Source: Macrostomum lignano
Lineage: Eukaryota
Length of the DNA stretch: 37,320 nucleotides
Direction of reading: 5' to 3'
Assembly (NCBI GenBank): GCA_002269645.1
Contig: NIVC01003862.1
Coordinates: forward strand, 1-37,320
Positions 7,301 through 35,334 of the stretch are shown piece by piece. A model generated the notes under the pieces. It searched no databases. It was not told the origin of the DNA and saw nothing but the letters and a program-made list of their open reading frames with translations. A program made the position numbers and the translations under genes. Position 1 is the stretch's first letter. Each line of letters opens with the position of its first letter.

Positions 7301-10300
7301 AACCGTGCTCTGTCGCTGACTCCGATTGACAATCGCCAACTCGCCGAAGCTGTCGCCTTTGTTCAACTCAACCACGGTGTGAGCAGTGTCAGCTGACTGG
7401 TCCAGAACGCACACCAGAACTGCAGGATTGAGAAGCAACATTTACTCAATATTACTCAAAACTGTAAAGGCGGTAAGATGTTTTGCTCGTGCTCTCCAAT
7501 TGTTGCCTTTGCTCTCTCCCTCCGGCTGTTCCGCTAATTGATTATCCCTGCCCTGATGGGCAGATGTGCAACCGACAGATCAGCCGCAGCTATTGCGCGG
7601 CGCATCTGAAGGCTGCGTACGGCTGTTCAGTCCAAGGACTGGGGGGTCGCCACACACACCCTCAGTTACCCAGGTAATGCTGGCACCCATTTTACAGCTG
7701 GTTGAACTGAAGCAATGCAGAGTTAAGTGTCTTGCTCAAGGACACAAATTGTTCCTGTGTAATGGGGAATCGAACCCACGACCTTCAAGTCGTGTGTCCG
7801 ACGCTCTAACTACTAGGCTACAGCCCCCTAGAGTACTAACCAACAAACTATGAACAACTGCAAGCAACAATGACCACGAGCAAGGAATGTAAATTTCTAC
7901 CAAAATGTAGCTCGTAGAGGCTTTAGTACAATGTAGAAAAGTCAAATCGTGTAAATTCTTACTACTCGTAGTAAAGTTTCCATGATACTAATAACACTCA
8001 AAATACGCTTCCGCAGGACAAGAGCAACTCACTGATTGTTAGACCCTCCAACGTTTTGTACAAAATATCTCTTTACAATCTGCATAGAAAGTTTACTCAC
8101 CAACACCATAGGTGATGAAGTAGAACGCGTGAGCCGGGTCATTCTGCCGCACAATAACTCGACCAGATTCATAGCTGTCAACGGCCGATCGATTTCTAAT
8201 AAGCTTAATAAAAGTTTGAATAGAATCAAGCCCCCGCGAGTTTACCTTTCCAGCACTCCCATTCGGGCTAGATTCCGCTGCATCCGCACCGGATAGTCAG
8301 CCAGCTGCTGAATGCCTCTGAGCGCAATCACCGCCTGGAAATGAGCAGTTCACGGATTTACAAAATGTCGGGGTTTAGCCAGTACTGCCTCCTGTTAATA
8401 CGGTCTCATATTTTTATTACAGACATAAAAGCTAGCACTTTTGTTGATTGAATTTTTCACACAAGTTTTTCTTAACTTTGGGCCTTCAAGTAACATTTAT
8501 TATTTAATGAAGTAGTACATACAAACTCACCAAAGGTCCTTTCATTTTGCTGAATTCATTTGTAAGCCTTTTAGAGTAGCAATATACGCCCCCCGTTGAA
8601 GAGAACAAAAAGAATGTAATAAAAGAATTAATTTTAAGTAAACTACATGTATCTCCTGACTTCAGCCTTTATATCTCAGCAATTCCCCCAGCAAGCCTTG
8701 ACATCTCAGCAATTCCCCCGAGCAAGCCTTGACTTCTGAGCAATTCCCCCTGTTAGCCTTGACATCTCAGCAATTCCCCGCAGCAAGCCTTGACATCTCA
8801 GCAATTCCCCCAGCAAGCCTTGACAACTCAGCAATTCCTCAGCAAGTCTTGACATCTCAGCAATTCTCCCCAGCAAGCCTTGACAACTCAGCAATTCCTC
8901 AGCAAGTCTTGACATCTCAGCAATTCTCCCCAGCAAGCCTTGGCATCTCAGCAATTCCCCCAGCAAGCCTTGAAATCTCAGCAATTCCCCCAGTAATTCT
9001 TGACATCTCAGCAATTCCCCCAGCAAGCCTTGAGATCTCAGCAATTCCTCAGCAAGTCTTGACATCTCAGCAATTCCTCAGCAAGTCTTGACATCTCAGC
9101 AATTCTCCCCAGCAAGCCTTGGCATCTCAGCAATTCCCCCAGCAAGCCTTGAAATCTCAGCAATTCCCCCAGTAATTCTTGACATCTCAGCAATTCCCCC
9201 AGCAAGCCTTGAGATCTCAGCAATTCCTCAGCAAGTCTTGACATCTCAGCAATTCCCCCAGCAAGCCTTGGCATCTCAGCAATTCCTCAGCAAGCCCTGA
9301 CATCTTAGCAATTCCCCAGTAAGCCGTGACATCTTAGCAATTCCCTCCCAGACTTGACACAGCTATTCCCCCGAGCAAAGCATCCCCCGATAGCAATAAG
9401 CTTTTTAGATTTGCCAAAAAACATCCTGCACTTTTGATTTGCATTAACTCCGCCCGATGTCACTAACATAGTTAATCTCTTCCTCACTGCGCTCCTCCGG
9501 ACACTTGGCCAAAACTCTTCGCGTCTCAGCTGACAGCCGCATCTGCCGGTTGGCTTTGAACTCGGCCTTGTTGAACACCGAGTAGCGACCGCCGCCGAAG
9601 CTACTGTTGCTGCTGCGGCTCAAGTCTATGGTCTGCTGCTGCGAGCGGAACGTGTTGCCCAATCTGCGGCTGCAACGAGGGGATTGGCGACAGCTCTTTT
9701 ATAAAGACTACCCTGAGCAGGCACACGAGCGGGGGATACGTACGCAGTCATACGAACAGGCACACACTCACACAGGAGTGTACAGCGGCACAAACTTTAT
9801 TTATCGTTAGGCATGTACACTTCACTGTGCCTTGGGGGTTGGCCCTCAAGGCCGTTAATTGCACGAGCAGAGCCAAGCCGATATTCCAATTCAGCTCCAA
9901 ATTAATGTGACTGCACTTGGAATCGAGCCTGGGCCGCTGGCAAATACGCATATAGAGATCTACGCTAGACCACGGGGCTACGGTCTGACTTTCTGTTTCA
10001 TACAGAGCAAGAAAATTCAATTTGAAGATGGTATAAATCGACACGATTATGAACAAGATAGATTTCTCACCAAGTCAGACGGTGTTGACAGCACAGCCTG
10101 AACACGGCAATCACTAGACGATAGTAAAAGTTCAACTGAAGCCGCAGCTGCTTCTGAAAAATGCAAAATGACGAGGTGTAGGCTATGGAAAATGTCTGCA
10201 TTCAAAAGATACCTTCGAATGGCCAGTTATGACGAATAATAAAAGAGGGCTGTAGACACCCTAGCGCAACGCCTTTTGGTGACATCTTCACAATTGACTG

Positions 10301-11614: not shown

Positions 11615-11890
11615 GTGTTGCAGCCTAGTGTTTAGAGCGTCGGACTCACGACTGAAAGGTCGGGGGTTCGATTCTCGACCCAATCAGGAACAATTTGTGT
11701 CCTTGAGCAAGAAACTTTACTCTGCATTGCTTCAGTTCATCCAGCTGTAAAATTGGTGCCAGCATTAGCTGGGGTAATTGTGGGTGTCTGCGCCCCCCCC
11801 CCCCCCAGTCCTTGGACTGAACAGCCGTACGCAGCTGCGGCTGAGCTGTCGCCGTTGCAAATCTGCCCATTGGAGCAGGTGTAATCAATT
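11615..11890 (+). mobile_element. SINE family A, second near full-length copy
   Basis: tRNA-like head (GCAGCCTAGTG...GGTTCGATTCTC), CORE-like block TGTGTCCTTGAGCAAGAAACTTTAC...CTGTAAAATTGG, and the same 3' tail as 7536-7620 apart from a short internal deletion between AGC repeats. Confidence 0.85.
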
Positions 11891-12538
11891 AATAATTATT
11901 TTCATTGCAGAAAATTTGTGGTTTTCAAACTTCGCAAACCCCCCTCCCCTGACCTTCAGTTGCATCGATCAGCTGCCATTTTCCTGCCGATTATTAGCCA
12001 CAATCTGCCTCAAGTCGGAGTTTTTACCTAAGACGGAAACCCAGTTGACTAAATTTGAAACGCTATGTATCAATCTTTCCAGACAGAATGTGCGATCTAA
12101 GAACCACAACTTCATTATGAGCTTTGACAGCCTCGAATGCATTTGATAGTTTTTTCTTGAAAAACATGTTAGTGCACCTCGGATAAACATACGCATGAAT
12201 GGACTTGCTGAATTTTGCAATTACTAAATCGAAAAGTTTATAGCTTGTACAATGATAATTCAAGCTTCCAATATCGCTAATAGAGTTTGAGGCGAAAAGC
12301 AGCGTAGAAAATTGCACGATATAGCCAGTGCAGCGTCCTTTTGTATTACTATTATGCATCTATTTATGACTGGGCACTATATGGCGTCAGGGATGTCATG
12401 AAGCCATGCAAGCATCAGCAGCCAATGAAATTCACGTGTTTTTTCAGGTATATTGTATTATCTCAGCAGGCAGATAAATGCCTGTTGAAATACACTCTGA
12501 TGCTGGAGTTTTCAACTGAAATCCAACACATCAGACTC

Positions 12539-13683
12539 ATGACCCGCTTTAGTTTACACCGACTGACTGCGTCTCTCATTCTCTGGCTTACTCTGCTGTC
12601 GGTAGCCAGAATTGTGCTCAACCCGGATGTACTTTTCCCTTCACACCGGCCGCTCTCCAACTCAAGCGGCGGTCCCAAGCTGCGCGATCGAGCACCCGTC
12701 AGCGCTCCGGCTCTGCCATGCGAGAACCGGCTGGTGTTCAAGGACTTGTCCTCAAATCTGAAGATTCCCAGAATCATTCACTTCACCGCCAAGAGCGAGT
12801 TCATGCTCAACAACTACAAGCGCTACCTGAAGCGGTGGTACGAAAGCTACTCTAACTTTACGTTCTACCTGTGGCGAGATGCAGACGCTCTGTGCCTTTT
12901 GCGACTTCACTATCCGGAGCTGCTTGAAGAGTTCGAGAGCGAGCTGCAGACACCGTTGGAGCGGTCAGACTTCATCCGAGCACTGGCGCTGTACCACTTC
13001 GGAGGACTGTACGTGGACATGGACACTCTCCCAGTCAGGAGCATGGAGCACCTGTTCGACAATCCGATGAGAGGCGCCATGGTCGCACAGGAGCCGGAAG
13101 AGCACGCCGTCTTCCTGTACAACTTGAAGTCGCTGGTGTCGAACGCCGTGATGTTCGGCATTCCAAGCACCCGTTTTATTACTACTACGTGTGCAAGATG
13201 CTCGCCAAGATCCGCAACCTCTCACCGAGTCCCAACCGCATGAGGACCAACTTCGAAGCCACTCACATCACGGGTCCGATTCTGATGAAGCAGGTGCACG
13301 AGAACTACACCCAGCTCGGTCTGTGCCCAGCCGAACAGGTCAACTGCTCAGTGCACCTGTTTAAGCCGGACGAATTCAGTCCGAACTACGACACGATCCA
13401 GAAGCGTCGCATCCAAAACATCTGCGTGCGGTACTTCAAGCTGCTCAATAGAGAACAGAGACGGCTCTGTAACAGTCTATTAGAGCGTCGGTTTATCCAC
13501 AGAAGGCTCAGTCTGCCGACGCTCGCAGTGCACGAATTTCAGCACTTAAGCGGGTACCGACGAAAGCCAAAATCTTTAGATGTGAAGAAGAATCAGAGCC
13601 AGGTGTTGGTCAGTGATTACTTTAATATATTGACGGTCATTCCGCCGATAAAATGGTACGATTCTACACAGAATCAGTGCTGA
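12539..13683 (+). pseudogene. Glycosyltransferase (DXD sugar-binding, GT32/SUR1-OCH1-like) copy 1, frameshifted (pseudogene or sequencing error)
   Basis: Near-identical to copy 2 from 12567 onward. One G is missing at 13164/13165 (TTCCAAGCAC vs TTCCGAAGCAC), which splits it into ORFs 12341..13243 and 13189..13683. It has its own N-terminus (MTRFSLHR); an alternative in-frame ATG lies at 12500. Confidence 0.85.
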
Positions 13684-14376
13684 TTTCCTAACTGTGATTC
13701 AATTAATCTTTCGTTCATTGCTTAGAAGAGGCAATTCTGAGTATGAGTACATTTGTAATCTAATGAAGTACTATATTTTCTTTTCTGTGAATGCAATAGT
13801 TTAATTGGTGTCTTGTGGCTGGTGTCTTCGAGTGGAACGGTCGTGAATTGCAAACAGGATGTCTCTAAACTGCCTCACTGCATATGCATGCTTCAGATAT
13901 CTTCTCATTTTTTATATTGATAGCGAATACAAAATGACAATCGTCCAAAATCTTCAGTCTTACTGGATTCCTTATTTGATACGTGCTTTTCTGCCTATCT
14001 TCAACTTTTTTCATTGAGACACTATTTGAGCTGCTGGACAATTTATTTTAATACCAATTTAGATAGAAAAAACTGTATTGATAATGAGAAACGCCTTCAC
14101 CCGTCTACACACCCGGCTAAATGCTCAGAGCAAAACTCATTTTCAGAGTTGTTTTTGAGTTCACCTGACAGCCTAGCAGGAGGCTTTATAATTCCGCAGA
14201 CAATTAGGCAAGCACACGTACTGTGTGAGCCGTCATGCTGGTCTGACTTTCTGAGTCTGTATATCTGAGTCTATCCCAGAATTCAAGCTATATAATTTAA
14301 TCTATCGTTTTCACGTTCAGAACTGAATTTATAGGTCTGGAAAATGTCTCCTTCATACACGTAAAAGTACTTGCAG

Positions 14377-14598
14377 TTGCAAGTGCTAGTGTTGTATTTT
14401 TTGCTTCCGTCCGTGTGGGCCGCAGACGGGGTGATCGGGGGTTCGGGGTCGGACTGCCCAGAGCTTGCCGGGTGTGATAGGCGAGAGAGTGGCGACCCCG
14501 AGGCGTACGGACACTTCGAGGTGGAAGTGGAGAGCCTGGGAGCGTACAGACACTCGTCCAGCATGGAATATTGTAGGAATACATGTCGACCCTTGTAG
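14377..14598 (+). CDS. Candidate exon of a small secreted Cys-containing protein (start codon and exon structure unresolved)
   Basis: Follows a TACTTGCAG acceptor. Has a hydrophobic signal-like stretch LQVLVLYFLLPSVWA, a strong GC3 bias in this frame, and Cys in CPELAGC and YCRNTC. No in-frame ATG in the exon. Confidence 0.4.
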   Translation: MQVLVLYFLLPSVWAADGVIGGSGSDCPELAGCDRRESGDPEAYGHFEVEVESLGAYRHSSSMEYCRNTCRPL

Positions 14599-14756
14599 TA
14601 CATAAACGAGTTGAAAATTGCTCATGCCTCTTAGCTGCATGGCGGTCCGAAGACGCAGCGTGGAGGCGAGCGTCGCCCATTCCGCAATGCTCATGCCTCA
14701 CGCTGCTCAAACTGCTTTTGAAGCGCCAGCTCGATGAAAATTCGATGAAGATCTGA

Positions 14757-15305
14757 GCCAGCACCAAGGGGCGCCAGCACCAAGGGGCGCCAGCACCAAG
14801 GGGCGCCAGCACCAAGGGGCGCCAGCACCAAGGGGCGCCAGCACCAAGGGGCGCCAGCACCAAGGGGCGCCAGCACCAAGGGGCGCCAGCACCAAGGGGC
14901 GCCAGCACCAAGGGGCGCCAGCACCAAGGGGCGCCAGCACCAAGGGGCGCCAGCACCAAGGGGCGCCAGCACCAAGGGGCGCCAGCACCAAGGGGCGCCA
15001 GCACCAAGGGGCGCCAGCACCAAGGGGCGCCAGCACCAAGGGGCGCCAGCACCAAGGGGCGCCAGCACCAAGGGGCGCCAGCACCAAGGGGCGCCAGCAC
15101 CAAGGGGCGCCAGCACCAAGGGGCGCCAGCACCAAGGGGCGCCAGCACCAAGGGGCGCCAGCACCAAGGGGCGCCAGCACCAAGGGGCGCCAGCACCAAG
15201 GGGCGCCAGCACCAAGGGGCGCCAGCACCAAGGGGCGCCAGCACCAAGGGGCGCCAGCACCAAGGGGCGCCAGCACCAAGGGGCGCCAGCACCAAGGGGC
15301 GCCAG
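14757..15305 (+). repeat. 16-bp GC-rich minisatellite GCCAGCACCAAGGGGC, 34 units
   Basis: Perfect head-to-tail units with no spacers. The 16-aa periodic ORFs are artefacts. Confidence 0.98.
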
Positions 15306-17263
15306 AGTAGGTGCTGAGGTGTGAAATCATTTTGTCAGCTTACTAGGGGAGGGGGCGTGTTGCGCCCCTCTGCCACTGTGGCTTACGCTTTAGTAAAATA
15401 TGTCTCCATAAAACTTTTCCTACTACTTGCATTTGTAGCACTTATAGTAGTACTTTAAGTTTACAATTTTTCAGTATAAAGGTTATCCAAACTGGAGGTG
15501 CTTGAAGCTGAAAATGTAATATGGAGAAAAAAGCCAGAATTTTTATAGCATTCTACCAACTCAATGTTTGATTAGTAAACAAGTCGTTATAAGGTGAACA
15601 AATGCATTGATCTGGTACATCTTGTGTACTGGATAATTGGCATGCAGTGGCACTGAGCAGGTGCCAAAAGTTCACCTCTAAATTGGCAATGATGAACGCA
15701 GGTTTACTGGCAGTAAGAACTGTAATTCAGTCCATTTACATGTAGACTAAATAATAAGAAAGGTGATTTCTACCCAGATTAAACACTAGCACAAAGGTTT
15801 TCTACACTTGCCTAGCTACCCTGCATGCAAGATACTGCAGGATGCCTACATTCTGGCATTAATTATTCAGTTGCTACAGGAGAGGGTAAACTCATACTCG
15901 CTGAGCGAGTATTTGGGCAGCAGGTCATACTGAGCAGCGGTGGGACACCCTACAGCAGACGGATCGACTCTGTAGAAAATTTCTTCTTGCTCTATCATCC
16001 GTGGATTCTGCATATATCCGGTAGAACCTATTTCTCATACTTGTACCAAAGCTGTCAACCGCAGGGTATTAAGGCAAGGACTACTACATTCGAAATTATA
16101 TCCTAAGTGCATGTTGTATGCCTAAAAATCATTAAAAATGGCACAACATTAAGATTCATTAGTTTTGTGAATCTATTTTTATTATTAGCTGTTACACATA
16201 TTTATACCGTAATGAAACTAAAAATCATAAAATCGATAATGACTACATGTACGGTGCAGTACCTGTAGGATTGTAGGCAGCATATAAAATTAACATAGGA
16301 TCCTAATTTCATAAATGAAAAGCTATAATAAAGACAATTGACATCAAAAGATGAACAATGAGTCTGTTTCCAATCAAAAGCGATAGCCAACATTTTTTGT
16401 ACTGAATTAAAAATAAAAAACCTCTTATCTTGATCCGTAAAGCTTTTTCGGTGAAACCTACCTCCTAAAATATTCCCAGAAACGTAGTTTTCCCTCAGAT
16501 TTGAGTAGTCCAATTGTTTAGCTAATTTTATATTTTTGCAGACGAAGGAGAAACTGTTAAAATTATGCATGTATATTTTTAGAAATTCCTGCTTGATTCC
16601 AATATTCTGATTTTATTTGCAAGACAATGGTTTTTAGCTTTTATGACAATGAGCATTGATTATCTATTTTTAACTCTTCATATTTATCTTATTGCTCAAT
16701 GGAAAAATAAATATTTAATTTCCAATTTTCAGTATTGCAAAGTTGAGAAAAAGGAAGTGGAACAAAGCAAAGGAAAAAAAACCTAGTTTTCTTGGAGAAC
16801 ATGTCTCCTCAGTGCACCAGAAAAGTACATAAGTGGCGAGGCGGATAAGCAATAAAAATGAGTTGAATTCTCAAGCAGTTTATCGCAGTAACCTATAAAT
16901 AATTTACTGCACGGCTGATCAACTATCCCGTAGAATGTGAACGACTTTTCAAGATCATTACTTGTCAGGCAAACTCATCTTTGACTTGGCTAATAAGATG
17001 AACTCTCACAAAAGTTGAATTGTAGCATTAAGCCTTCATGAATAAACCATCTGCCAAAACTGCAGTTCTCAAGCCAGTAAATGCCTGTTTTACTTCCTTA
17101 AATTATTTGATTTAACGTTGTTGCGTTTCAGCCCTTGAAAGGCACTACACTGAATGGTGCGCCAGAGCCAATGGAATTCAAGCCAGTGTTAGTTAAGCTT
17201 GGTTTAGCTTAGGTTAAATGTCTGTCAGATGCAAGCTATGCTCGCTGCTTGCCACTTAACGGA

Positions 17264-18427
17264 ATGAAACCGAGACGACTAACCTGCCTTATCGTTCAAC
17301 GCAGACTGGCTGCGTCTCTCATTCTCTGGCTTACTCTGCTGTCGGTAGCCAGAATTGTGCTCAACCCGGATGTACTTTTCCCTTCACACCGGCCGCTCTC
17401 CAACTCAAGCGGCGGTCCCAAGCTGCGCGATCGAGCACCCGTCAGCGCTCCGGCTCTGCCATGCGAGAACCGGCTGGTGTTCAAGGACTTGTCCTCAAAT
17501 CTGAAGATTCCCAGAATCATTCACTTCACCGCCAAGAGCGAGTTCATGCTCAACAACTACAAGCGCTACCTGAAGCGGTGGTACGAAAGCTACTCGAACT
17601 TTACGTTCTACCTGTGGCGAGACGCAGACGCTCTGTGCCTTTTGCGACTTCACTATCCGGAGCTGCTTGAAGAGTTCGAGAGCGAGCTGCAGACACCGTT
17701 GGAGCGGTCAGACTTCATCCGAGCACTGGCGCTGTACCACTTCGGAGGACTGTACGTGGACATGGACACTCTCCCAGTCAGGAGCATGGAGCACCTGTTC
17801 GACAATCCGATGAGAGGCGCCATGGTCGCACAGGAGCCGGAAGAGCACGCCGTCTTTCTGTACAACTTGAAGTCGCTGGTGTCGAACGCCGTGATGTTCG
17901 GCATTCCGAAGCACCCGTTTTATTACTACTACGTGTGCAAGATGCTCGCCAAGATCCGCAACCTCTCACCGAGTCCCAACCGCATGAGGACCAACTTCGA
18001 AGCCACTCACATCACGGGTCCGATTCTGATGAAGCAGGTGCACGAGAACTACACCCAGCTCGGTCTGTGCCCAGCCGAACAGGTCAACTGCTCAGTGCAC
18101 CTGTTTAAGCCGGACGAATTCAGTCCGAACTACGACACGATCCAGAAGCGTCGCATCCAAAACATCTGCGTGCGGTACTTCAAGCTGCTCAATAGAGAAC
18201 AGAGACGGCTCTGTAACAGTCTATTAGAGCGTCGGTTTATCCACAGAAGGCTCAGTCTGCCGACGCTCGCAGTGCACGAATTTCAGCACTTAAGCGGGTA
18301 CCGACGAAAGCCAAAATCTTTAGATGTGAAGAAGAATCAGAGCCAGGTGTTGGTCAGTGATTACTTTAATATATTGACGGTCATTCCGCCGATAAAATGG
18401 TACGATTCTACACAGAATCAGTGCTGA
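17264..18427 (+). CDS. Glycosyltransferase (DXD sugar-binding, GT32/SUR1-OCH1-like) copy 2, intact, intronless, type II membrane topology
   Basis: MKPRR + TM helix (LAASLILWLTLLSVARIVL), KIPRIIHFT, ERSDFIRALALYHFGGLYVDMD (DXD), SNAVMFGIPKHPF, TGPILM. Confidence 0.92.
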   Translation: MKPRRLTCLIVQRRLAASLILWLTLLSVARIVLNPDVLFPSHRPLSNSSGGPKLRDRAPVSAPALPCENRLVFKDLSSNLKIPRIIHFTAKSEFMLNNYKRYLKRWYESYSNFTFYLWRDADALCLLRLHYPELLEEFESELQTPLERSDFIRALALYHFGGLYVDMDTLPVRSMEHLFDNPMRGAMVAQEPEEHAVFLYNLKSLVSNAVMFGIPKHPFYYYYVCKMLAKIRNLSPSPNRMRTNFEATHITGPILMKQVHENYTQLGLCPAEQVNCSVHLFKPDEFSPNYDTIQKRRIQNICVRYFKLLNREQRRLCNSLLERRFIHRRLSLPTLAVHEFQHLSGYRRKPKSLDVKKNQSQVLVSDYFNILTVIPPIKWYDSTQNQC

Positions 18428-19120
18428 TTTCCTAACTGTGATTCAATTAATCTTTCGTTCATTGCTTAGAAGAGGCAATTCTGAGTATGAGTACATTTGT
18501 AATCTAATGAAGTACTATATTTTCTTTTCTGTGAATGCAATAGTTTAATTGGTGTCTTGTGGCTGGTGTCTTCGAGTGGAACGGTCGTGAATTGCAAACA
18601 GGATGTCTCTAAACTGCCTCACTGCATATGCATGCTTCAGATATCTTCTCATTTTTTATATTGATAGCGAATACAAAATGACAATCGTCCAAAATCTTCA
18701 GTCTTACTGGATTCCTTATTTGATACGTGCTTTTCTGCCTATCTTCAACTTTTTTCATTGAGACACTATTTGAGCTGCTGGACAATTTATTTTAATACCA
18801 ATTTAGATAGAAAAAACTGTATTGATAATGAGAAACGCCTTCACCCGTCTACACACCCGGCTAAATGCTCAGAGCAAAACTCATTTTCAGAGTTGTTTTT
18901 GAGTTCACCTGACAGCCTAGCAGGAGGCTTTATAATTCCGCAGACAATTAGGCAAGCACACGTACTGTGTGAGCCGTCATGCTGGTCTGACTTTCTGAGT
19001 CTGTATATCTGAGTCTATCCCAGAATTCAAGCTATATAATTTAATCTATCGTTTTCACGTTCAGAACTGAATTTATAGGTCTGGAAAATGTCTCCTTCAT
19101 ACACGTAAAAGTACTTGCAG

Positions 19121-19343
19121 TTGCAAGTGCTAGTGTTGTATTTTTTGCTTCCGTCCGTGTGGGCCGCAGACGGGGTGATCGGGGTTCGGGGGTCGGACTG
19201 CCCAGAGCTTGCCGGGTGTGATAGGCGAGAGAGTGGCGACCCCCGAGGCGTACGGACACTTCGAGGTGGAAGTGGAGAGCCTGGGAGCGTACAGACACTC
19301 GTCCAGCATGGAATATTGTAGGAATACATGTCGACCCTTGTAG
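19121..19343 (+). pseudogene. Second copy of the candidate small secreted-protein exon, frame-disrupted
   Basis: Same sequence as 14377-14598 except for G/C homopolymer length changes (G5/G4 swapped around TTC; C4 to C5), giving a net +1 frameshift. Confidence 0.35.
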
Positions 19344-19501
19344 TACATAAACGAGTTGAAAATTGCTCATGCCTCTTAGCTGCATGGCGGTCCGAAGACG
19401 CAGCGTGGAGGCGAGCGTCGCCCATTCCGCAATGCTCATGCCTCACGCTGCTCAAACTGCTTTTGAAGCGCCAGCTCGATGAAAATTCGATGAAGATCTG
19501 A

Positions 19502-19840
19502 GCCAGCACCAAGGGGCGCCAGCACCAAGGGGCGCCAGCACCAAGGGGCGCCAGCACCAAGGGGCGCCAGCACCAAGGGGCGCCAGCACCAAGGGGCGCC
19601 AGCACCAAGGGGCGCCAGCACCAAGGGGCGCCAGCACCAAGGGGCGCCAGCACCAAGGGCGCCAGCACCAAGGGGCGCCAGCACCAAGGGGCGCCAGCAC
19701 CAAGGGGCGCCAGCACCAAGGGCGCCAGCACCAAGGGGCGCCAGCACCAAGGGGCGCCAGCACCAAGGGGCGCCAGCACCAAGGGGCGCCAGCACCAAGG
19801 GGCGCCAGCACCAAGGGGCGCCAGCACCAAGGGGCGCCAG
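19502..19840 (+). repeat. 16-bp minisatellite, second copy, 21 units (two are 15-bp variants)
   Basis: Same unit as 14757-15305. 334 bp equals 21 x 16 minus 2. Confidence 0.98.
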
Positions 19841-20860
19841 AGTAGGTGCTGAGGTGTGAAATCATTTTGTCAGCTTACTAGGGGAGGGGGCGTGTTGCGC
19901 CCCTCTGCCACTGTGGCTTACGCTTTAGTAAAATATGTCTCCATAAAACTTTTCCTACTACTTGCATTTGTAGCACTTATAGTAGTACTTTAAGTTTACA
20001 ATTTTTCAGTATAAAGGTTATCCAAACTGGAGGTGCTTGAAGCTGAAAATGTAATATGGAGAAAAAAGCCAGAATTTTTATAGCATTCTACCAACTCAAT
20101 GTTTGATTAGTAAACAAGTCGTTATAAGGTGAACAAATGCATTGATCTGGTACATCTTGTGTACTGGATAATTGGCATGCAGTGGCACTGAGCAGGTGCC
20201 AAAAGTTCACCTCTAAATTGGCAATGATGAACGCAGGTTTACTGGCAGTAAGAACTGTAATTCAGTCCATTTACATGTAGACTAAATAATAAGAAAGGTG
20301 ATTTCTACCCAGATTAAACACTAGCACAAAGGTTTTCTACACTTGCCTAGCTACCCTGCATGCAAGATACTGCAGGATGCCTACATTCTGGCATTAATTA
20401 TTCAGTTGCTACAGGAGAGGGTAAACTCATACTCGCTGAGGGAATATTTGGGCAGCAGGTCATATTGAGCAGCGGTGGGACACCCTACAGCAGACGGATC
20501 GACTCTGTAGAAAATTTCTTCTTGCTCTATCATCCGTGGATTCTGCATATATCCGGTAGAACCTATTTCTCATACTTGTACCAAAGCTGTCAACCGCAGG
20601 GTATTAAGGCAAGGACTACTACATTCGAAATTATATCCTAAGTGCATGTTGTATGCCTAAAAATCATTAAAAATGGCACAACATTAAGATTCATTAGTTT
20701 TGTGAATCTATTTTTATTATTAGCTGTTACACATATTTATACCGCAATGAAACTAAAAATCATAAAATCGATAATGACTACATGTACGGTGCAGTACCTA
20801 TAGGATTGTAGGCAGCATATAAAATTAACATAGGATCCTAATTTCATAAATGAAAAGCTA

Positions 20861-22026
20861 CGAGGGATGTTCCATAAGTACTTATACTTTTGCATGCTGC
20901 TCAGGAACTACGCAACCAATCATTGTAAGTTTTATGTCGCTGGAAAGCGGCTTTACTCATCTTTAATCTGTCGCCAAAATCATTTCGTTCTGTCAACTAT
21001 GTCAAAAGTTACAACAAAAAACGTAGTCAAAGGTCACCCATAGACTTACAAGAAATTTTCAAAATCAAAACTTCAAAGTTCAGCACGCAGAGTTATTTCG
21101 GATTCTACATAATGCATTCTTTTTTGCTTCATAAGCGAATGCCACACCCTTTTCGTCTATGGAAAATACTGGCCTAAGCTTTCACAGCATCTTAATCTTA
21201 AGATCACAGCATCTTAATCTTGTAAAGTTTCACCACCTTGGCTGCTGCTGCATCACCATGGATGTGAACTCAAGGGAAGGACAGCGCGCTGCAATTTTTA
21301 CCCTCTGGAAACTCGGAAAAAAGCGATCAGAGATTTATGCGGATTTATGCAACATTCATGGAGCTAATGCGGTGAGCAGGATGACCGTCTACAACTGGGT
21401 TGAGCAGTTCGAAGCAGGAAGGACCAATGTTGCTGATTTGCCGAGGTCGGGCCGCCCCTGCACATCAGGCTCTGATGCTCTCACCGATCGAATTCTTGAT
21501 CTGCTGGACGAAGATTGTCGGCTAACGATTCGACAGATTGCAGATAGACTGGACACGCCGAGCACAACTGTGCATCGCTGCTTGTCGCGCATGGACTTTG
21601 TCAAGCTGACTGCTCGTTGGGTGCCACGCCTACTCACCTCGGACTTGAGACTGCAGAGGCAGCAGATTTGTCAGGCCAATATTCGGATGATGGAAGAATA
21701 CGGTGGTTGGGATCTCTTCCATCGAATGATAGTCACTGGAGATGAAACCTGGATTCCCCATTTTGATCCACCAACGAAACGTGATTCCCAGGTCTGGATG
21801 CTGAAGGGCTCTGATCCTCCGGTAAAAGCTCAAAGGGACGCACATGGAAAGAAGATCATGCTGTCTCTGTTTTTCGACTGCAATGGTCCTCTAACTGTCG
21901 AGTTTTTGGAGCCAAACACTACAATAAACTCTGAGCGCTACGTTGAAACGCTAACAAAGCTGCATCATGACATCCAGAACAAGCGTCGTGAAAATCCCAG
22001 ACCTTTCATTCTTCATCATGACAATG
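20861..22026 (+). mobile_element. Tc1/mariner (mariner-type) DNA transposon, 3'-truncated, left end only
   Basis: Absent from the paralogous site at ~16325. Begins TA|CGAGGG, a mariner-like ITR start at a TA target, and encodes a mariner transposase. No right ITR was found. Confidence 0.93.
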
Positions 22027-22055
22027 TAATAAAGACAATTGACATCAAAAGATGA
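21258..22055 (+). CDS. Truncated mariner transposase (265 aa), reading through into host flank
   Basis: N-terminal HTH region, ARWVPRLLT linker motif, first catalytic Asp in IVTGDETW, second in HHDN. It then runs into host-derived VIKTIDIKR*. The YSPDL motif and third Asp are missing. Confidence 0.88.
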   Translation: MDVNSREGQRAAIFTLWKLGKKRSEIYADLCNIHGANAVSRMTVYNWVEQFEAGRTNVADLPRSGRPCTSGSDALTDRILDLLDEDCRLTIRQIADRLDTPSTTVHRCLSRMDFVKLTARWVPRLLTSDLRLQRQQICQANIRMMEEYGGWDLFHRMIVTGDETWIPHFDPPTKRDSQVWMLKGSDPPVKAQRDAHGKKIMLSLFFDCNGPLTVEFLEPNTTINSERYVETLTKLHHDIQNKRRENPRPFILHHDNVIKTIDIKR

Positions 22056-22964
22056 ACAATGAGTCTGTTTCCAATCAAAAGCGATAGCCAACATTTTTTG
22101 TACTGAATTAAAAATAAAAAACCTCTTATCTTGATCCGTAAAGCTTTTTCGGTGAAACCTACCTCCTAAAATATTCCCAGAAACGTAGTTTTCCCTCAGA
22201 TTTGAGTAGTCCAATTGTTTAGCTAATTTTATATTTTTGCAGACGAAGGAAAAACTGTTAAAATTATGCATGTATATTTTTAGAAATTCCTGCTTGATTC
22301 CAATATTCTGATTATATATGCAAGACAATGGTTTTTAGCTTTTATGACATTGAGCATTGATTATCTATTTTTAACTCTTCATATTTATCTTATTGCTCAA
22401 TGGAAAAATAAATATTTAATTTCCAATTTTCAGTATTGCAAAGTTGAGAAAAAGGAAGTGGAACAAAGCAAAGGAAAAAAAACCTAGTTTTCTTGGAGAA
22501 CATGTCTCCTCAGTGCACCAGAAAAGTACAGAACTGGCGAGGCGGATAAGCAATAAAAATGAGTTGAATTCTCAAGCAGTTTATCGCAGTAACCTATAAA
22601 TAATTTACTGCACGGCTGATCAAGTATCCCGTAGAATGTGAACGACTTTTCAAGACCATTACTTGTCAGGCAAACTCATCTTTGACTTGGCTAATAAGAT
22701 GAACTCTCACAAAAGTTGAATTGTAGCATTAAGCCTTCATGAATAAACTATCTGCCAAAACTGCAGCTCTCAAGCCAGTAAATGCCTGTTTTACTTCCTT
22801 AAATTATTTGATTTAACGTTGTTGCGTTTCAGCCCTTGAAAGGCACTACACTGAATGGTGCGCCAGAGCCAATGGAATTCAAGCCAGTGTTAGTTAAGCT
22901 TGGTTTAGCTTAGGTTAAATGTCTGTCAGATGCAAGATATGCTCGCTGCTTGCCACTTAACGGA

Positions 22965-24125
22965 ATGAAACCGAGACGACTAACCTGCCTTATCGTTCAA
23001 CGCAGACTGGCTGCGTCCCTGATGCTCTGGGTTACTCTGCTGTCGGTAGCCAGAATTGTGCTCAACCCGGATGTACTTTTCCCTTCACACCGGCCGCTCT
23101 CCAACTCAAGCGGCGGTCCCAAGCTGCGCGATAGAGCACCCATCAGTGCTCCAGCTCTGCCATGCGAGAACCGGCTGGTGTTCAAGGACTTGTCCTCAAA
23201 TCTGAAGATTCCCAGAATCATTCACTTCACCGCCAAGAGCGAGTTCATGCTCAACAACTACAAGCGCTACCTGAAGCGGTGGTACGAAAGCTACTCGAAC
23301 TTTACGTTCTACCTGTGGCGAGATGCAGACGCTCTGTGCCTTTTGCGACTTCACTATCCGGAGCTGCTTGAAGAGTTCGAGAGCGAGCTGCAGACACCAT
23401 TGGAGCGGTCAGACTTCATCCGAGCACTGGCGCTGTACCACTTCGGAGGACTGTACGTGGACATGGACACTCTCCCAGTCAGGAGCATGGAGCACCTGTT
23501 CGACAATCCGATGAGAGGCGCCATGGTCGCACAGGAGCCGGAAGAGCACGCCGTCTTTCTGTACAACTTGAAGTCGCTGGTGTCGAACGCCGTGATGTTC
23601 GGCATTCCGAAGCACCCGTTTTATTACTACTACGTGTGCAAGATGCTCGCCAAGATCCGCAACCTCTCACCGAGTCCCAACCGCATGAGGACCAACTTCG
23701 AAGCCACTCACATCACGGGTCCGATTCTGATGAAGCAGGTGCACGAGAACTACACCCAGCTCGGTCTGTGCCCAGCCGAACAGGTCAACTGCTCAGTGCA
23801 CCTGTTTAAGCCGGACGAATTCAGTCCGAACTACGACACGAGCCAGAAGCGTCGCATCCGGTACACCTGTATTCGGCGCTACAGGACTTTAAAAAACCAA
23901 CAGCGGCGACTTTGCAATAGTCTGCTTTACCGCAGGTTTGCAAACAGAAGGCTCACACAGAAAACATTTGCGGTCCACGATTTCCGGCACTTCAGCACCA
24001 ATAAGCAGAAGAGAAAGTCGTCTAAGAACAGACAGAAGGGTTTAGTTCTGCACGGGCCTTTGTTTAATGCTTTCACAGTTATTCCTAGTTTGAAACAGTT
24101 TAATTCCACTGAGGAGCAGTGCTAA
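22965..24125 (+). CDS. Glycosyltransferase (DXD sugar-binding, GT32/SUR1-OCH1-like) copy 3, intact, divergent C-terminus
   Basis: Same motifs as copy 2. The protein is almost identical up to ~23840, then strongly diverged but still open to the stop (ends ...STEEQC). Confidence 0.92.
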   Translation: MKPRRLTCLIVQRRLAASLMLWVTLLSVARIVLNPDVLFPSHRPLSNSSGGPKLRDRAPISAPALPCENRLVFKDLSSNLKIPRIIHFTAKSEFMLNNYKRYLKRWYESYSNFTFYLWRDADALCLLRLHYPELLEEFESELQTPLERSDFIRALALYHFGGLYVDMDTLPVRSMEHLFDNPMRGAMVAQEPEEHAVFLYNLKSLVSNAVMFGIPKHPFYYYYVCKMLAKIRNLSPSPNRMRTNFEATHITGPILMKQVHENYTQLGLCPAEQVNCSVHLFKPDEFSPNYDTSQKRRIRYTCIRRYRTLKNQQRRLCNSLLYRRFANRRLTQKTFAVHDFRHFSTNKQKRKSSKNRQKGLVLHGPLFNAFTVIPSLKQFNSTEEQC

Positions 24126-27619: not shown

Positions 27620-29152
27620 TCACAAGTTGGCCCGCCGCAAAGAAATTGTATAGTAGGAGAAGCAAACGATGGACACAAGCTGGCACACAGTGCTTGCCAC
27701 GCCTCCGTACATGTAGCAGACGTAGCCAAAGCACTCCGGTATGCTAGCAGCAGTCCCAGGGGCCGTGGAATTGAACGCGACGCCGCCTGTCTTATCACCG
27801 GAAGTTGTTCGAATTTGAGCGTCGTACAGAGCGCCGAATTGCAGAATAAGAAGCAGGCCAGTTGTTGAAGCTAAAAGAAGACAGGAAGAGTAGAGCCGTC
27901 CGAACAGGTGCGGCTTTTCAGTCATAGAGATGATCACGGGTGGAATGGTGAATAGGGTGGCGTTGTTGATACTATCAAAAACGTAGGCCGTAATCGTAAT
28001 ACCAAAAGCTGACACGCCTGGAAGCAGTGGGACGCTAAGAAGCAGCGTCGAAGGAGCGCCGAAGCAGACCACGCTGGCAAGCAAAACAGCAGATCGATGA
28101 CTTGCCTTCGGTAGGTGTCTGTCAGTAAGAAGCCCAATCAGACAGCGCCAAGCTATGCCCACCAGAGTTGGAAACCAAAAATAGTAAACGTCGTATTGAG
28201 TCAGCGACAAACTTCGAGTGACGCTAGTCAGGTTTAGAAAGGTTGTCAGGTTTGCTCCGATGGACAGAGCAACGCCCAGCATGAGAGGCATGAAGCGATC
28301 TGAGCAGCACACGGTAAAAAAGTATTGTGTCTGCGTCAGGAAACCGTCCTGCGGTCGAGTGTCGATCGTCTCAGCCGTCGCAGTATGCGTTTCGTTCATG
28401 TTAGAGTTGAATGCATCCTGTAGTTTCTGTCGATCCTGTTCCGGTGGCTGTTTGTCTAGAATAGGGCTCGATTCGCTAGGTTTTTCTTTATCCAAAGAAT
28501 CATCGAACGGTGTTAGAAAGATAAAAGCGAACACATGAATAGTGGCATTTAAAACTAGGAGCACGATCCGGGTGCCTACAGGTCTCTGGTCGGTGTTACT
28601 TCTGTGCATATTGTCGAAGACCACGTAGTAGATGAAGGCCACAACTGGGGGACCCAGACTGAAGAAGTTGTCCGCCAGCGTCATGACAAAGACACGTTGA
28701 CTCGATGAGAAACTTTTCATGCAGCAACCAATCGCAGCCACGTAGCTGTAGTTGAAGCTGTGACCGTACAGGAACAGCAGAATGAACAGCAGCCATAAGT
28801 TCTGGCGCAGCGGCTCTGGATACGCCATTGCGACGGCAACAAAAGTCATGGACAGCGTGGAGAGGACGCCACTGAAGACGACCGAAGCTCTCGTACCAAA
28901 ACGGTCGTAAAAGAGTCCGCTGAGAAAGATTAGCACTGTTCCCAGGTACAGTAGAGCAACGCTAAAGTCCAGTTGTCTCTGGTTTAGTCCATAGCTGAAC
29001 TTTATGAAATTGGCAAATATAGGGCCTGAGACACACTGGCCAGCCATCATCAGAATTAAACAGGCGCTCATTAGCAGAAGGCATTTTCGCCGAGAAGTCT
29101 CCGTCATGCAGACATTTTTCACCGTTTCCGGTTGCTGCTTAGTATCATCCAT
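27620..29152 (-). CDS. Major facilitator superfamily transporter (Nodulin-like/NFD4/MCH1-like), intronless, 510 aa
   Basis: Long ORF with about 12 hydrophobic helices in two bundles around a polar central loop. MFS motif A is SGLFYDRFGTR, echoed by IGLLTDRH. The N-terminal F..F.K..YGLNQRQLD pattern is typical of the Nodulin-like/MCH1 group. First ATG (MDDTK) is at 29152. Confidence 0.88.
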   Translation of the reverse strand: MDDTKQQPETVKNVCMTETSRRKCLLLMSACLILMMAGQCVSGPIFANFIKFSYGLNQRQLDFSVALLYLGTVLIFLSGLFYDRFGTRASVVFSGVLSTLSMTFVAVAMAYPEPLRQNLWLLFILLFLYGHSFNYSYVAAIGCCMKSFSSSQRVFVMTLADNFFSLGPPVVAFIYYVVFDNMHRSNTDQRPVGTRIVLLVLNATIHVFAFIFLTPFDDSLDKEKPSESSPILDKQPPEQDRQKLQDAFNSNMNETHTATAETIDTRPQDGFLTQTQYFFTVCCSDRFMPLMLGVALSIGANLTTFLNLTSVTRSLSLTQYDVYYFWFPTLVGIAWRCLIGLLTDRHLPKASHRSAVLLASVVCFGAPSTLLLSVPLLPGVSAFGITITAYVFDSINNATLFTIPPVIISMTEKPHLFGRLYSSCLLLASTTGLLLILQFGALYDAQIRTTSGDKTGGVAFNSTAPGTAASIPECFGYVCYMYGGVASTVCQLVSIVCFSYYTISLRRANL

Positions 29153-30089
29153 TAGTGAAGAAAACACTGCGCCGGAAACTTAGTTTCTAATTAGTTTTAT
29201 AGATGTGTAGATCGGTAAAATACCTGGTATGTGGCGTCTTAAGCGAGAAATGTTCAGTTTAGGAGCTTGTGGATCTTGCTCTGGGTTTTTTATGGCACCC
29301 TAACTATAGCTTTTTTGAATTCTTCTCCGCCTTGTCCTGCACTGCTCTATATAATCGGAGGAAATTATTGGGTGCGCGATCTGTTACGCAAAAATATTAT
29401 AGGCGATTAAAACTGTAAGCTCAACCCCGGATCGAGAGTTAACCAGCTGTACCGGGAGTTCACATTCTCATATTAAATGACTTCGATCCCTTCTTTTCAA
29501 TTGCTCAACTATAATTCACATTGGTACATTATTAAGCTCAAGCATTTCATAACCACCCTGAGTAAATACAGCACTATATCATGCCAGAATTATTTAATGC
29601 AAACTCATGTGGACTGAGAATGCTCACTCTGAAAAAAACCCGTGGCCTTGCAGTTGCTTTGACTCAATGCAGCGCCCCCCCCCCCCTGTATCTTATTTCG
29701 GACTCAATACGAGCTAATCTACATGCATGAGCAACTGGGCTCAAAATGGGATCCGAAATAAGCAAACTATATATTGCATGTTAATATATAGCGAAGACAC
29801 CCCTACGCAGGCAGGCAATTCTCGTGGACAGAATTGAACTCCTGACATAAATTTCCGCTCGCGTATACTAATAAACAGCGAAATTAAGTCGCTTAGCTAT
29901 ATACTGTGCGTTCAATTATTCAGCCAATGTAGTTCAATTCAAAGGCGGCTCGAGTTTCTATTCAGAAACCTATGAACAAGCATGTGGGTAACGTGATCTA
30001 CAATATTGGGTGTGGTTACGTGCATACATGTACGAGTATATCCGATACATGTATGCACTATAGCTATAGCTATAGCTATAACTAGATAT

Positions 30090-32129
30090 TTGAAGGGCGA
30101 GGGCCTTTCAAAACCGCAAAGCTCACGTTACCCTCATACGGTGGATCATGTACATGATCTCTAACCGTACGGTCACTGCCCAACTTCTCGGGCAAACTGC
30201 CTCCGCCAGAGTCTGTAAGGGCGGACCCCAAGGCGGAGTCCACACCCCGACGCTCTGGAACCTGGTCATGGACGCTCTTCTGGGCGACTCCCGACCTGAT
30301 CCCGTCCTAAAGTCGGGTATGCTGACGACGTCACTGCCATTGTGGCAGGGCCATCCCCCAGCACGCTCAGGGATCTGATGCAGAGCTTTATCCGCAAAGC
30401 AGAATCCTGGGCCAATGACAACGGTCTGGAACTATCTGAGCCCAAAACTGTTGCCATATGTTCACCCACAGAATACGCTGGAACATACGACCTCTGCAGC
30501 TATACGGCAGAGATATTGCCTTCGCGCACCAGACCAGATGTCTCGGGGTCATACTTGACCACCGGCTCAACTGGTCCTTCCACGTGAAAGCAAATGCCAA
30601 GCGTGCCTCAGCCATCCTGGCCCAGCTCCGACGAGCACTTGGCACCTCTTGGGGTCTATCCACAAAGCGACTTTGGTGGATCTACACTTCCGTAGTTAGA
30701 CCTGCCATTACGTACGCCTCGTTGTCTGGGTCAGCGCTACCCAGGTCAAAAGTCATGCAGATTTGCTCAACACGATCCAGGCAGAGCGTGTAGGCTTATC
30801 TGCAACGCCACCAGGTCCACGCCCTTTGCCGGCATGGGGGCCTTCCTTAATCTACCGCCTCTCGACCTCTTCGTCAGGGGTGAGGCGGCTAGAACGACGC
30901 GGCGTTTACTCGATGCCGGTGTCAAATTCCTTTACATGAGGGCACCTGCTAAGCGGAACCTCGTCCCGCATAGCGACCTGTGCCTCAACATTCTCAACGA
31001 GTGTCAGGCCAATCGCGTCTTCACCGATGGCATTGCCTCAACGCTCAACCTGAGACAACGCTACTCTGTAGCTATCGACTCATGCGATACCATCAATGAC
31101 CACTGGAACCCTGGTGAGCTTCATTGCTACACCGACGGTTCTAAACAGTCAGCCAACACCGGCTTTGGTGTTGGAATCTTCCTGAACGGAAGGGTCATCG
31201 CAACCCACGCTCAGTACACTGGGGTCAACTCCAGTGTCTTCCAAAATGAAGTTCTCGCCATCAGCTCCCGCATCGCAGAGGTCCTCGCCACTGGCGTTAC
31301 CGGTAAGAACATCATTTTCCATTCGGACAGCAAAGCTGCCTTGCACGCCATCAGTGGCTGCAGCACCAATTCTGATACAGTCCTCGACTGTATCAAACTC
31401 CTCAACGTGTTGATCTCCACCAACAAAATCACCCTTAAACGGATTCCGGGGCATATGGGGATCCGAGGAAATGAGTTGGCTGACGCCCTTGCAAAAGTTG
31501 GCGCCTCCGGCTCCTCTCTCGGTCCCGAACCCCTTGTCCCGATTCCTGGCTGTGTCATTGACTCGCGAATCAAAACGTGGATCAGGACCCAGCACCGCTC
31601 GACTTGGGCGAACTGCACTACCTGCAGGCAATCCAGAGGCGCTGTCCCTCAGCCCTCTCACCAGCTCCGGAAGCTCCTCTTGAGCCTCTCGCGCAGAGAC
31701 ATCCGGGCTGCCACCATGACCCTCTCAGGTCACGGCTGCTTCTCTAGGCACCAGTACCTGCAGGGCAACGCCACCAACGCCACCTGAAGCTTCTGTAACT
31801 CAGGTGACGAAACCGCTGAGCATTTCGTCAGCATCTGTCCCGCCTTTACGCGAGCCAGACTCACTTACCTCGGGTCACACACATCTATTACTGAAGCGTG
31901 CAAACCCGAAAACTTTAATCAGCTCATGCGCTGCCTTCGGGCCACCCGCAGGGCTGAACTCTCATTTCCAGAGAGCACTATAGCTGCTTGCGACACTGGG
32001 GGACCTCCCTGGGCGGCGCCAACCCTTCATCTATAGCGACGCGTCGGCCATTCAGGGATTAGCAGAATGGGTGTTCGCGCCTTCCCGCTGTGTCCCTCTG
32101 GGACAGCCAAGTAAGTCAAGTAAGTCAAG
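30090..32129 (+). mobile_element. 5'-truncated, inactivated non-LTR retrotransposon (RT + RNase H + CCHC; probably R1/LOA/I group)
   Basis: RT motifs PQGG..PTLWNL, GYADD, KT, LGVILD..LNW, IYTSVVRPAITYA. RNase H motifs YTDGSK, QNEVLAI, SDSKAAL, IPGHMGIRGNELADALAK. C-terminal (C to stop)SFC...ETAEHFVSICP. At least four frameshifts and a stop at 31785. 3' UTR ends in CAAGTAAGT repeats. Confidence 0.93.
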
Positions 32130-34605: not shown

Positions 34606-35334
34606 GGGTGCGTTCGAGTGACTTAAAATGACTTAAACTGCCATTTTAACGTCCTTAGTAAAACAAATGTTAAGCAGACTAAATGTAAAAATAATCTAGG
34701 TAAATGATAGTCAAATTACAATTAAGAATTAATTCAATTTCTAAAACCGGTCTAAGATTAAAAAAACGTCGCCTATACTTCTTCCAACTCAACCTGAACG
34801 CCTAGGCACCGTTTTAACTTCGCTCGCAATTACCACATTTAATCGTAATTGAATATTTTGTATTCTTCACCTTTGTTCTATCATTTGCTTTCACGTCTTT
34901 TTGCTCAGTTCGCTGCCCGTCATTATAGTCTTTGAATAATTGCTTAGTACTAATATCACAGTCAACTTATATACGAAGTATACCAAATCATATTGTCTAT
35001 AGATTGTATATTGCTGTCCTGACGTGACGTGACGTGAAATATGACGTGAAAGCAAATGATAGAACAAAGGTGAAGAATACAAAATATTCAATTACGATTA
35101 AATGTGGTAATTGCGAGCGAAGTTAAAACGGTGCCTAGGCGTTCAGGTTGAGTTGGAAGAAGTATAGGCGACGTTTTTTTAATCTTAGACCGGTTTTAGA
35201 AATTGAATTAATTCTTAATTGTAATTTGACTATCATTTACCTAGATTATTTTTACATTTAGTCTGCTTAACATTTGTTTTACTAAGGACGTTAAAATAAC
35301 AGTTTAAGTCATTTTAAGTCACTCGAACGCACCC
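34606..35334. mobile_element. Foldback/MITE-like element with 292-bp TIRs, probably PIF/Harbinger-related
   Basis: 34606-34897 is the reverse complement of 35043-35334, with 2 mismatches seen. Spacer is 145 bp. Termini GGGTGCGTTCG; flanked on both sides by the 3-bp direct repeat TTG. Confidence 0.88.

Follow-up and report, generated by a model that had tools for sequence, protein, structure and literature searches.

A tandem glycosyltransferase array in Macrostomum lignano with a chimeric middle gene, a likely product of unequal exchange between old paralogues

A stretch of 37,320 nucleotides of Macrostomum lignano DNA (assembly GCA_002269645.1, contig NIVC01003862.1, positions 1 to 37,320), referred to here in its entirety as the window, contains three tandem copies of a glycosyltransferase gene. 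Positions are those of the window, and the parts of the gene array lie on the forward strand. Copy 1 (12539-13683) is an A-type gene with its own ATG and a short tail, MTRFSLHR..., and is broken by a 1-bp deletion. Copy 2 (17264-18427; 387 amino acids) is a B/A hybrid, and copy 3 (22965-24125; 386 amino acids) is a B-type gene; both are open from ATG to stop. A tblastn search found no additional gene copies or fragments in the window, and the window is free of any N.

The genes are laid out as a single open frame encoding a short cytoplasmic tail, one N-terminal hydrophobic segment, a stem modelled with low confidence, and a catalytic domain. Pfam assigns the domain to Gly_transf_sug (PF04488) with 43.8 bits against a cut-off of 23, and the same profile matches all 61 of the 61 aligned relatives. 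D166 and D168 of the DXD motif, YVDMDT, are invariant among those relatives, as are ten other positions. The AlphaFold2 model has a predicted local distance difference test (pLDDT) score of 87, and its best solved match is fungal Och1 (PDB 9n3s, E-value 2.8e-10). On profile and model, the product is predicted to be a GT32-like (Och1-like) type II membrane glycosyltransferase with a GT-A fold. It has the PF04488 domain, the DXD motif, the fold and the type II membrane layout in common with Och1, an alpha-1,6-mannosyltransferase, but only about 16% of its residues. Reading it as a large clostridial toxin glucosyltransferase domain (PF12919) was rejected; the similarity is limited to 27 of the 382 positions of the profile and to 27-37 residues in PDB chains, all around the DXD loop, and is of the generic GT-A kind. 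Distant relatives of the PF04488 type number more than 4000. Among 1.84 billion representative proteins none exceeded 41% identity, and the best among 5.8 billion clusters reached 30%. With best matches at those two levels, the protein databases yielded no usable orthologous or two-copy locus for polarising sites.

BLAST of the window against itself resolves the locus into units and blocks. A tract common to all three copies occupies 12561-13414 in copy 1 (H1), 17304-18158 in copy 2 (H2) and 23005-23859 in copy 3 (H3), the last with B-specific patches at 23018-23031 and 23133-23153. H1 is 99.5% identical to copy 2 and 98.4% identical to copy 3 (12561-13414 against 23005-23859). Upstream of H1 lies the 5' flank block of copy 1 (P1, to 12560). 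Downstream of it lies T1 (13415-16325), consisting of the A-type last 89 codons plus downstream DNA, which copy 1 has in common with copy 2 only (T2, 18159-20860); copy 3 continues into a block of its own (T3, 23860 onward). Ahead of H2 and H3 are U2 (16326-17303) and U3 (22027-23004), each a B-type upstream region with the first 13 codons of its gene, and these differ at 11 of 978 positions. Taken as joined segments, H1 plus T1 (12561-16325) matches H2 plus T2 (17304-20860) at 99.5-99.6%, and U2 plus H2 (16326-18158) matches U3 plus H3 (22027-23859) at 98.8%, ungapped over 1833 bp. The 3' end of T1 directly abuts the 5' end of U2 (16325/16326). A whole unit of 4.5-4.7 kb is thus tandemly repeated.

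Unit 1 measures 4743 bp and unit 2 measures 5701 bp. The difference in length comprises a mariner fragment of 1166 bp, 13 fewer copies of a 16-bp minisatellite in unit 2, and two single-base indels. Accordingly, spacer 1 (13684-17263) equals spacer 2 (18428-22964) except for the mariner fragment and the 13 minisatellite units. The minisatellite, GCCAGCACCAAGGGGC, lies downstream of each A-type 3' end, where local GC rises to 0.50-0.53; it is present as 34.3 perfect units at 14757-15305 in unit 1 and as 21.3 units with 98% matches at 19502-19840 in unit 2. The mariner fragment (20861-22026) is found in unit 2 only. It has HTH_48 and Transposase_1 matches in Pfam, a 5' inverted terminal repeat, CGAGGGATGTTCCATAAGTAC, that adjoins TA, and a transposase open reading frame (ORF; 21159-22055) cut directly after the HDN motif. 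The exact empty site is preserved in unit 1, which reads GCTA/TAATAAAG, compared with GCTA/CGAGGG...GACAATG/TAATAAAG in unit 2. No 3' terminal repeat was found for the element at 20861-22026, and there is no target-site duplication when it is judged against the unit 1 empty site. On these two grounds we rejected it as a datable standard insertion. It is a fragment, and looks like the outcome of a one-ended or captured insertion rather than of normal transposition.

Copy 2 changes its affiliation near its 5' end. It matches copy 3 across 978 bp of upstream DNA and the first 15 codons, and upstream of 17304, where it equals copy 3, base-for-base alignment with copy 1 is impossible. From 17317 it tracks copy 1 through the stop codon and a further ~2.7 kb downstream. 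The original prediction had placed the switch inside CTGCGTC (17310-17316), and the bases it relied on are present: position 12566 is A, 17309 and 23010 are G, and copy 2 reads TCTCATTC at 17317-17324, as does copy 1 at 12574-12581, in place of CCTGATGC in copy 3 (23018-23025). Both a three-way alignment and a maximum chi-square recombination test bear this placement out. Over the 197 informative sites of the alignment, the best breakpoint falls between 17309, the last copy-3-like site, and 17317, the first copy-1-like site, with a chi-square of 184; the maximum among 10,000 permutations was 23 (p<=1e-4). There is a single dominant switch point, and it lies at homologous in-frame positions. 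The interval corresponds to codons 16-18 of copy 2, where the 19-residue stretch of highest hydrophobicity begins (residues 15-33, LAASLILWLTLLSVARIVL). Its 5' limit depends on one site, 12566/17309, without which the interval widens to 13 bp (17304-16). Copy 2 is therefore chimeric, as had been proposed: its upstream region and tail are B-type, and its 3' end and the DNA beyond are A-type.

The two parental types are far apart outside the common tract. When copy 2 (A-type in its 3' end) is compared with copy 3 (B-type), the proportion of synonymous differences (pS) in the last 89 codons is 0.78, which is saturated, and the proportion of nonsynonymous differences (pN) is 0.33; in the preceding ~284 codons of the tract the values are 0.036 and 0.006. 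The 3' edge of the tract, at 18158/18159, is abrupt, with identity per 100 bp dropping from 1.00 to 0.66 to 0.57, and so is the 5' edge at 12560/12561. Beyond the 5' edge, some ancient likeness persists. Positions 12420-12520 of the copy 1 flank are colinear with the flanks of copies 2 and 3 at ~63% identity, and the last 160 bp of the copy 1 flank give a local score of 15 against the B flank, compared with 8.4 +/- 1.3 in shuffled sequence (reached by 0 of 1000 shuffles; p<0.001). Copy 1 also begins with an ATG of its own at 12539, in frame and 22 bp before position 12561. Because the tails are saturated, the edges abrupt, and the copy 1 flank both similar to that of B and provided with an ATG, A and B are ancient paralogues along their full length, and patchy gene conversion has homogenised their first ~298 codons. 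Ten A/B differences within the tract are clustered, with four in 14 bp (17317-17330) and four in 21 bp (17432-17452; permutation p=2e-5), and of the 11 tract positions at which copy 2 departs from copy 3, 7 are synonymous changes; only four of the first 298 residues differ. Such clustered, mostly synonymous patches fit unconverted remnants.

At the protein level, A and B are identical across residues ~24-292 except for one V/I change. C302, C317 and H338, which are invariant in the 61 relatives, are retained in the C-termini of both types. Since each tail keeps these residues, both divergent tails look functional. The AlphaFold2 model places them, with good confidence, in helices and a strand belonging to the catalytic domain. 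The C-terminal part of GT-A enzymes usually shapes the acceptor site, and A and B may accordingly differ in acceptor.

Copy 1 lacks one G between 13164 and 13165. The resulting frameshift leads to a premature stop at 13241-13243, and tblastn recovers the gene as two pieces in different frames (12533-13177 and 13165-13680). The context of the missing base, CC[G]AA, is not a homopolymer, so a homopolymer sequencing error is not the obvious cause. Aside from this base, copies 1 and 2 differ in their coding sequence by three synonymous substitutions and a Thr/Ala change at codon 16 (12566), and the 3' coding part of copy 1 is identical to that of copy 2. Given this near-identity, inactivation must have been very recent, or else the lesion is a consensus error. 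The frameshift that had been suspected is thus there, with the 1-bp deletion as the only lesion, and within the window the hybrid is the sole open A-type frame. The hybrid had further been described as the A-type enzyme under the B promoter and cytoplasmic tail. The B upstream DNA and tail (MKPRRLTCLIVQRR) are indeed present, with the transmembrane variants and the C-terminal 89 residues coming from A. Calling it an A-type enzyme over-reads the data, as its A-specific residues are I20, L23, V60 and I293 plus the last 89, and it is by these that the two types differ.

We consider it likely that the order A, B/A hybrid, B is the duplication product of unequal exchange between two ancient tandem paralogues. 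The original prediction proposed the same origin, and the block structure, the duplicated spacer and the single switch support it; a tandem duplication with both ends at equivalent in-frame positions of the paralogues on either side is the hallmark of unequal exchange between those genes. The starting point would have been A (upstream) and B (downstream) in tandem, both GT32-like type II membrane glycosyltransferases. Patchy conversion would then have made their first ~298 codons nearly identical, leaving the 5' flanks and the last 89 codons distant. Inside this converted tract, B of one chromatid or homologue could pair with A of the other, and unequal exchange would yield a duplicated unit of ~4.5-4.7 kb, reaching from the 5' edge of the tract in A to the 5' edge of the tract in B. 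We infer that the exchange was homologous. The present boundary may be a resolution point at the edge of homology. It may also have been moved there by later conversion between copies 1 and 2 that ran until homology ended, limited on the left by the heterology between P1 and U and on the right by the mariner fragment. Alternatively, the exchange may have taken place between haplotypes that had already diverged, in which case the uneven divergence described below and the mariner and minisatellite differences would have been allelic from the start.

Several observations weigh against unequal exchange in its simplest form. The distance from the switch to the 5' edge of the 855-bp tract that contains it is 6-13 bp. 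This is the sole A/B tract similar enough to recombine (12561-13414 in copy 1), and a landing within 13 bp of the tract edge has a likelihood of ~1.5% if crossovers are evenly spread. At the switch itself identity extends for just 7 bp; the next 14 bp contain 4 mismatches, and only after these does a run of 101 identical bases begin. Substitutions between the units are also uneven, amounting to 12 of 3216 positions in H plus T (0.37%) versus 11 of 978 in U (1.12%; Fisher p=0.011), and the comparison of non-coding T alone with U is likewise unequal (p=0.010). One clean sister-chromatid event implies equal values and does not predict this; therefore, either later conversion or exchange between diverged haplotypes is required. 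Within the tract, sites 17309, 17596, 17857 and 17908 group copy 2 with copy 3, and site 17623 is private to copy 2. Changes confined to copy 1, or conversion, could account for the four discordant sites. Outside the two patches, the three tract copies resemble one another to about the same degree (3-5 differences per ~820 bp), and the A-type label of H2 rests on ten sites. The edge of the tract is, moreover, where later conversion, heteroduplex spread or an assembler's overlap would all end, which makes a mapped crossover site doubtful. The earlier claim that the crossover is mappable to a ~7-bp window therefore holds for the present switch; what the 7 bp delimit is the boundary as it now stands, and the original crossover may have been elsewhere.

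The main rival to unequal exchange is an assembly artefact, in which the genome has A and B only and two haplotypes of one unit were joined through a false overlap of the common tract. The units do differ as alleles would, with 0.37-1.1% substitutions, a mariner fragment in one opposite an exact empty site in the other, and a minisatellite of unequal length. The join coincides with the limit of A/B homology, just where a layout built on overlaps would pass from one read to another. The best match of a neighbouring gene is, in addition, from Macrostomum lignano (51%), whose lineage has duplicated, hard-to-assemble genomes. Set against this, the contig has no N runs, and a proper overlap would have to be accepted at 98.4% identity across a mere 855 bp with non-matching overhangs on both sides. 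The contig also retains a 2.3-kb array of an 8-bp repeat (91-93% matches) and a perfect 549-bp array of the 16-bp repeat; such tandem arrays suggest long reads, which would be able to span the 4.7-kb unit. On balance we regard stacked haplotypes as unlikely. Somewhat less probable again is a microhomology-mediated duplication at GACTGRCTGCGTC that took place while A and B were diverged over their full length, the body of copy 3 being later overwritten by conversion from copy 2. This would explain without coincidence why the A/B tract starts at the junction, and it agrees with a junction identity of only 7-13 bp and with two B-specific patches left as unconverted remnants. However, an unguided non-homologous event is unlikely to hit homologous in-frame positions of two paralogues, and conversion into copy 3 would have had almost no 3' homology to work with (59% identity). 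It also predicts that U2 and U3 diverge no more than T1 and T2, and the opposite is observed.

Two further accounts have very little to recommend them in our view. According to one, the A-type gene was originally copy 2, and copy 1 arose recently as a partial duplicate (12561-16325) that came to lie beside unrelated DNA, so that only copy 1 would be chimeric. Copy 1 is indeed the broken copy, its likeness to copies 2 and 3 starts at the same base (12561), and U plus H of copies 2 and 3 form one ungapped 1833-bp match of even divergence (1.1-1.3%). We nevertheless rejected copy 1 as a truncated duplicate because it has a start codon of its own, in frame and 22 bp ahead of 12561, and because its flank still shows a colinear likeness to the B flank (p<0.001); the exact abutment of T1 and U2 at 16325/16326 is, besides, explained by a tandem unit and not by a dispersed partial copy. 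The other, equally improbable, invokes conversion only, with an old three-copy array in which the B upstream tract was copied onto the middle copy and no crossover took place. Conversion has clearly been active in the array, as the common tract with its patchy remnants attests, but the spacers are duplicated in full, including non-coding DNA up to the mariner site. Because essentially the whole unit would have to be copied, this account collapses into a duplication.

A broader scenario can tentatively be entertained, although we regard it as fairly unlikely. The array would exemplify domain-partitioned concerted evolution, in which conversion holds the ~298 donor-binding codons identical and selection separates the C-terminal 89. 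The exchange would have put an A-type C-terminus under the B regulatory region and tail, and the hybrid would have functionally replaced a decaying copy 1. Should the arrangement be real, it would offer a base-resolved example of a tandem enzyme family gaining a new pairing of regulatory region, membrane anchor and C-terminus, with conversion and unequal exchange seen on the same 855 bp. It also carries two cautions: a breakpoint that can be placed within a few bases beside the end of a homology tract may still lie away from the exchange site, and recent tandem units with allele-like differences call for confirmation at the level of reads.

The remainder of the window holds several other features. 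A 2.3-kb tandem array of the 8-bp unit GTCTCAGT (1818-4144; ~290 units, 91-93% matches) produces long spurious ORFs in all three forward frames. An inverted repeat of ~210 bp with 86% identity (7612-7822 and 11619-11835) encloses ~3.8 kb, in which lies a tandem array of a 30-bp unit (8664-9345). The repeat stops ~700 bp short of copy 1, on its upstream side, and the enclosed segment may be a mobile element with terminal inverted repeats. At 962-1399, on the reverse strand, a 145-amino-acid ORF has a weak match to a C-type lectin domain (E-value 4.8e-05) and may be one exon of a larger gene. On the other side of the array, an intronless ORF of 515 amino acids (27620-29167, reverse strand) encodes an MFS transporter with MFS_1 and Nodulin-like domains; this is the gene whose best match, at 51%, is from Macrostomum lignano. 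A 317-amino-acid ORF with an RNase H domain (30834-31787, forward strand) lies in the GC-richest part of the window (0.55) and is possibly a retroelement remnant. Finally, 729 bp at 34606-35334 match their own reverse complement at 90.6%, forming a long palindrome or foldback in an AT-rich part (GC 0.34).

The closest parallel for the array is given by the anti-Lepore haemoglobin genes, which are arranged as delta, a beta/delta hybrid, and beta. In both cases there are two tandem paralogues, and both parents and a middle hybrid are kept, after unequal homologous exchange in the haemoglobin genes and, as we propose, here. The hybrid likewise takes its 5' part and promoter from the downstream gene and its 3' part from the upstream gene. 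Here, however, the parents are alike only in the converted 855-bp tract, the switch is at the edge of that tract, and the upstream parent is frameshifted. The present case is also known from the three-copy arrangement alone, with neither a Lepore-type single-hybrid haplotype nor a parental one. The chimeric CYP11B1/CYP11B2 gene offers another likeness, in that one paralogue supplies the regulatory region and the neighbouring one the coding body, the two being joined in frame. The same holds for the mouse H-2 D/L hybrid gene (PMC2187929), but H-2 dm1 is a deletion product and the hybrid described here would be a duplication product. Hybrid genes have also arisen by non-allelic homologous recombination in the KIR complex (PMC2816608) and at GYPA/GYPB (bioRxiv 10.1101/083634). 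As at our locus, copies were gained together with a new hybrid locus in a tandem membrane-protein family, and the breakpoints fall in near-identical paralogous sequence; those systems are backed by population data and spanning reads, whereas ours comes from a single assembled sequence. Set beside these systems, the hybrid is most likely an ordinary product of unequal exchange between neighbouring paralogues, a tidy example of a familiar process rather than a new mechanism.

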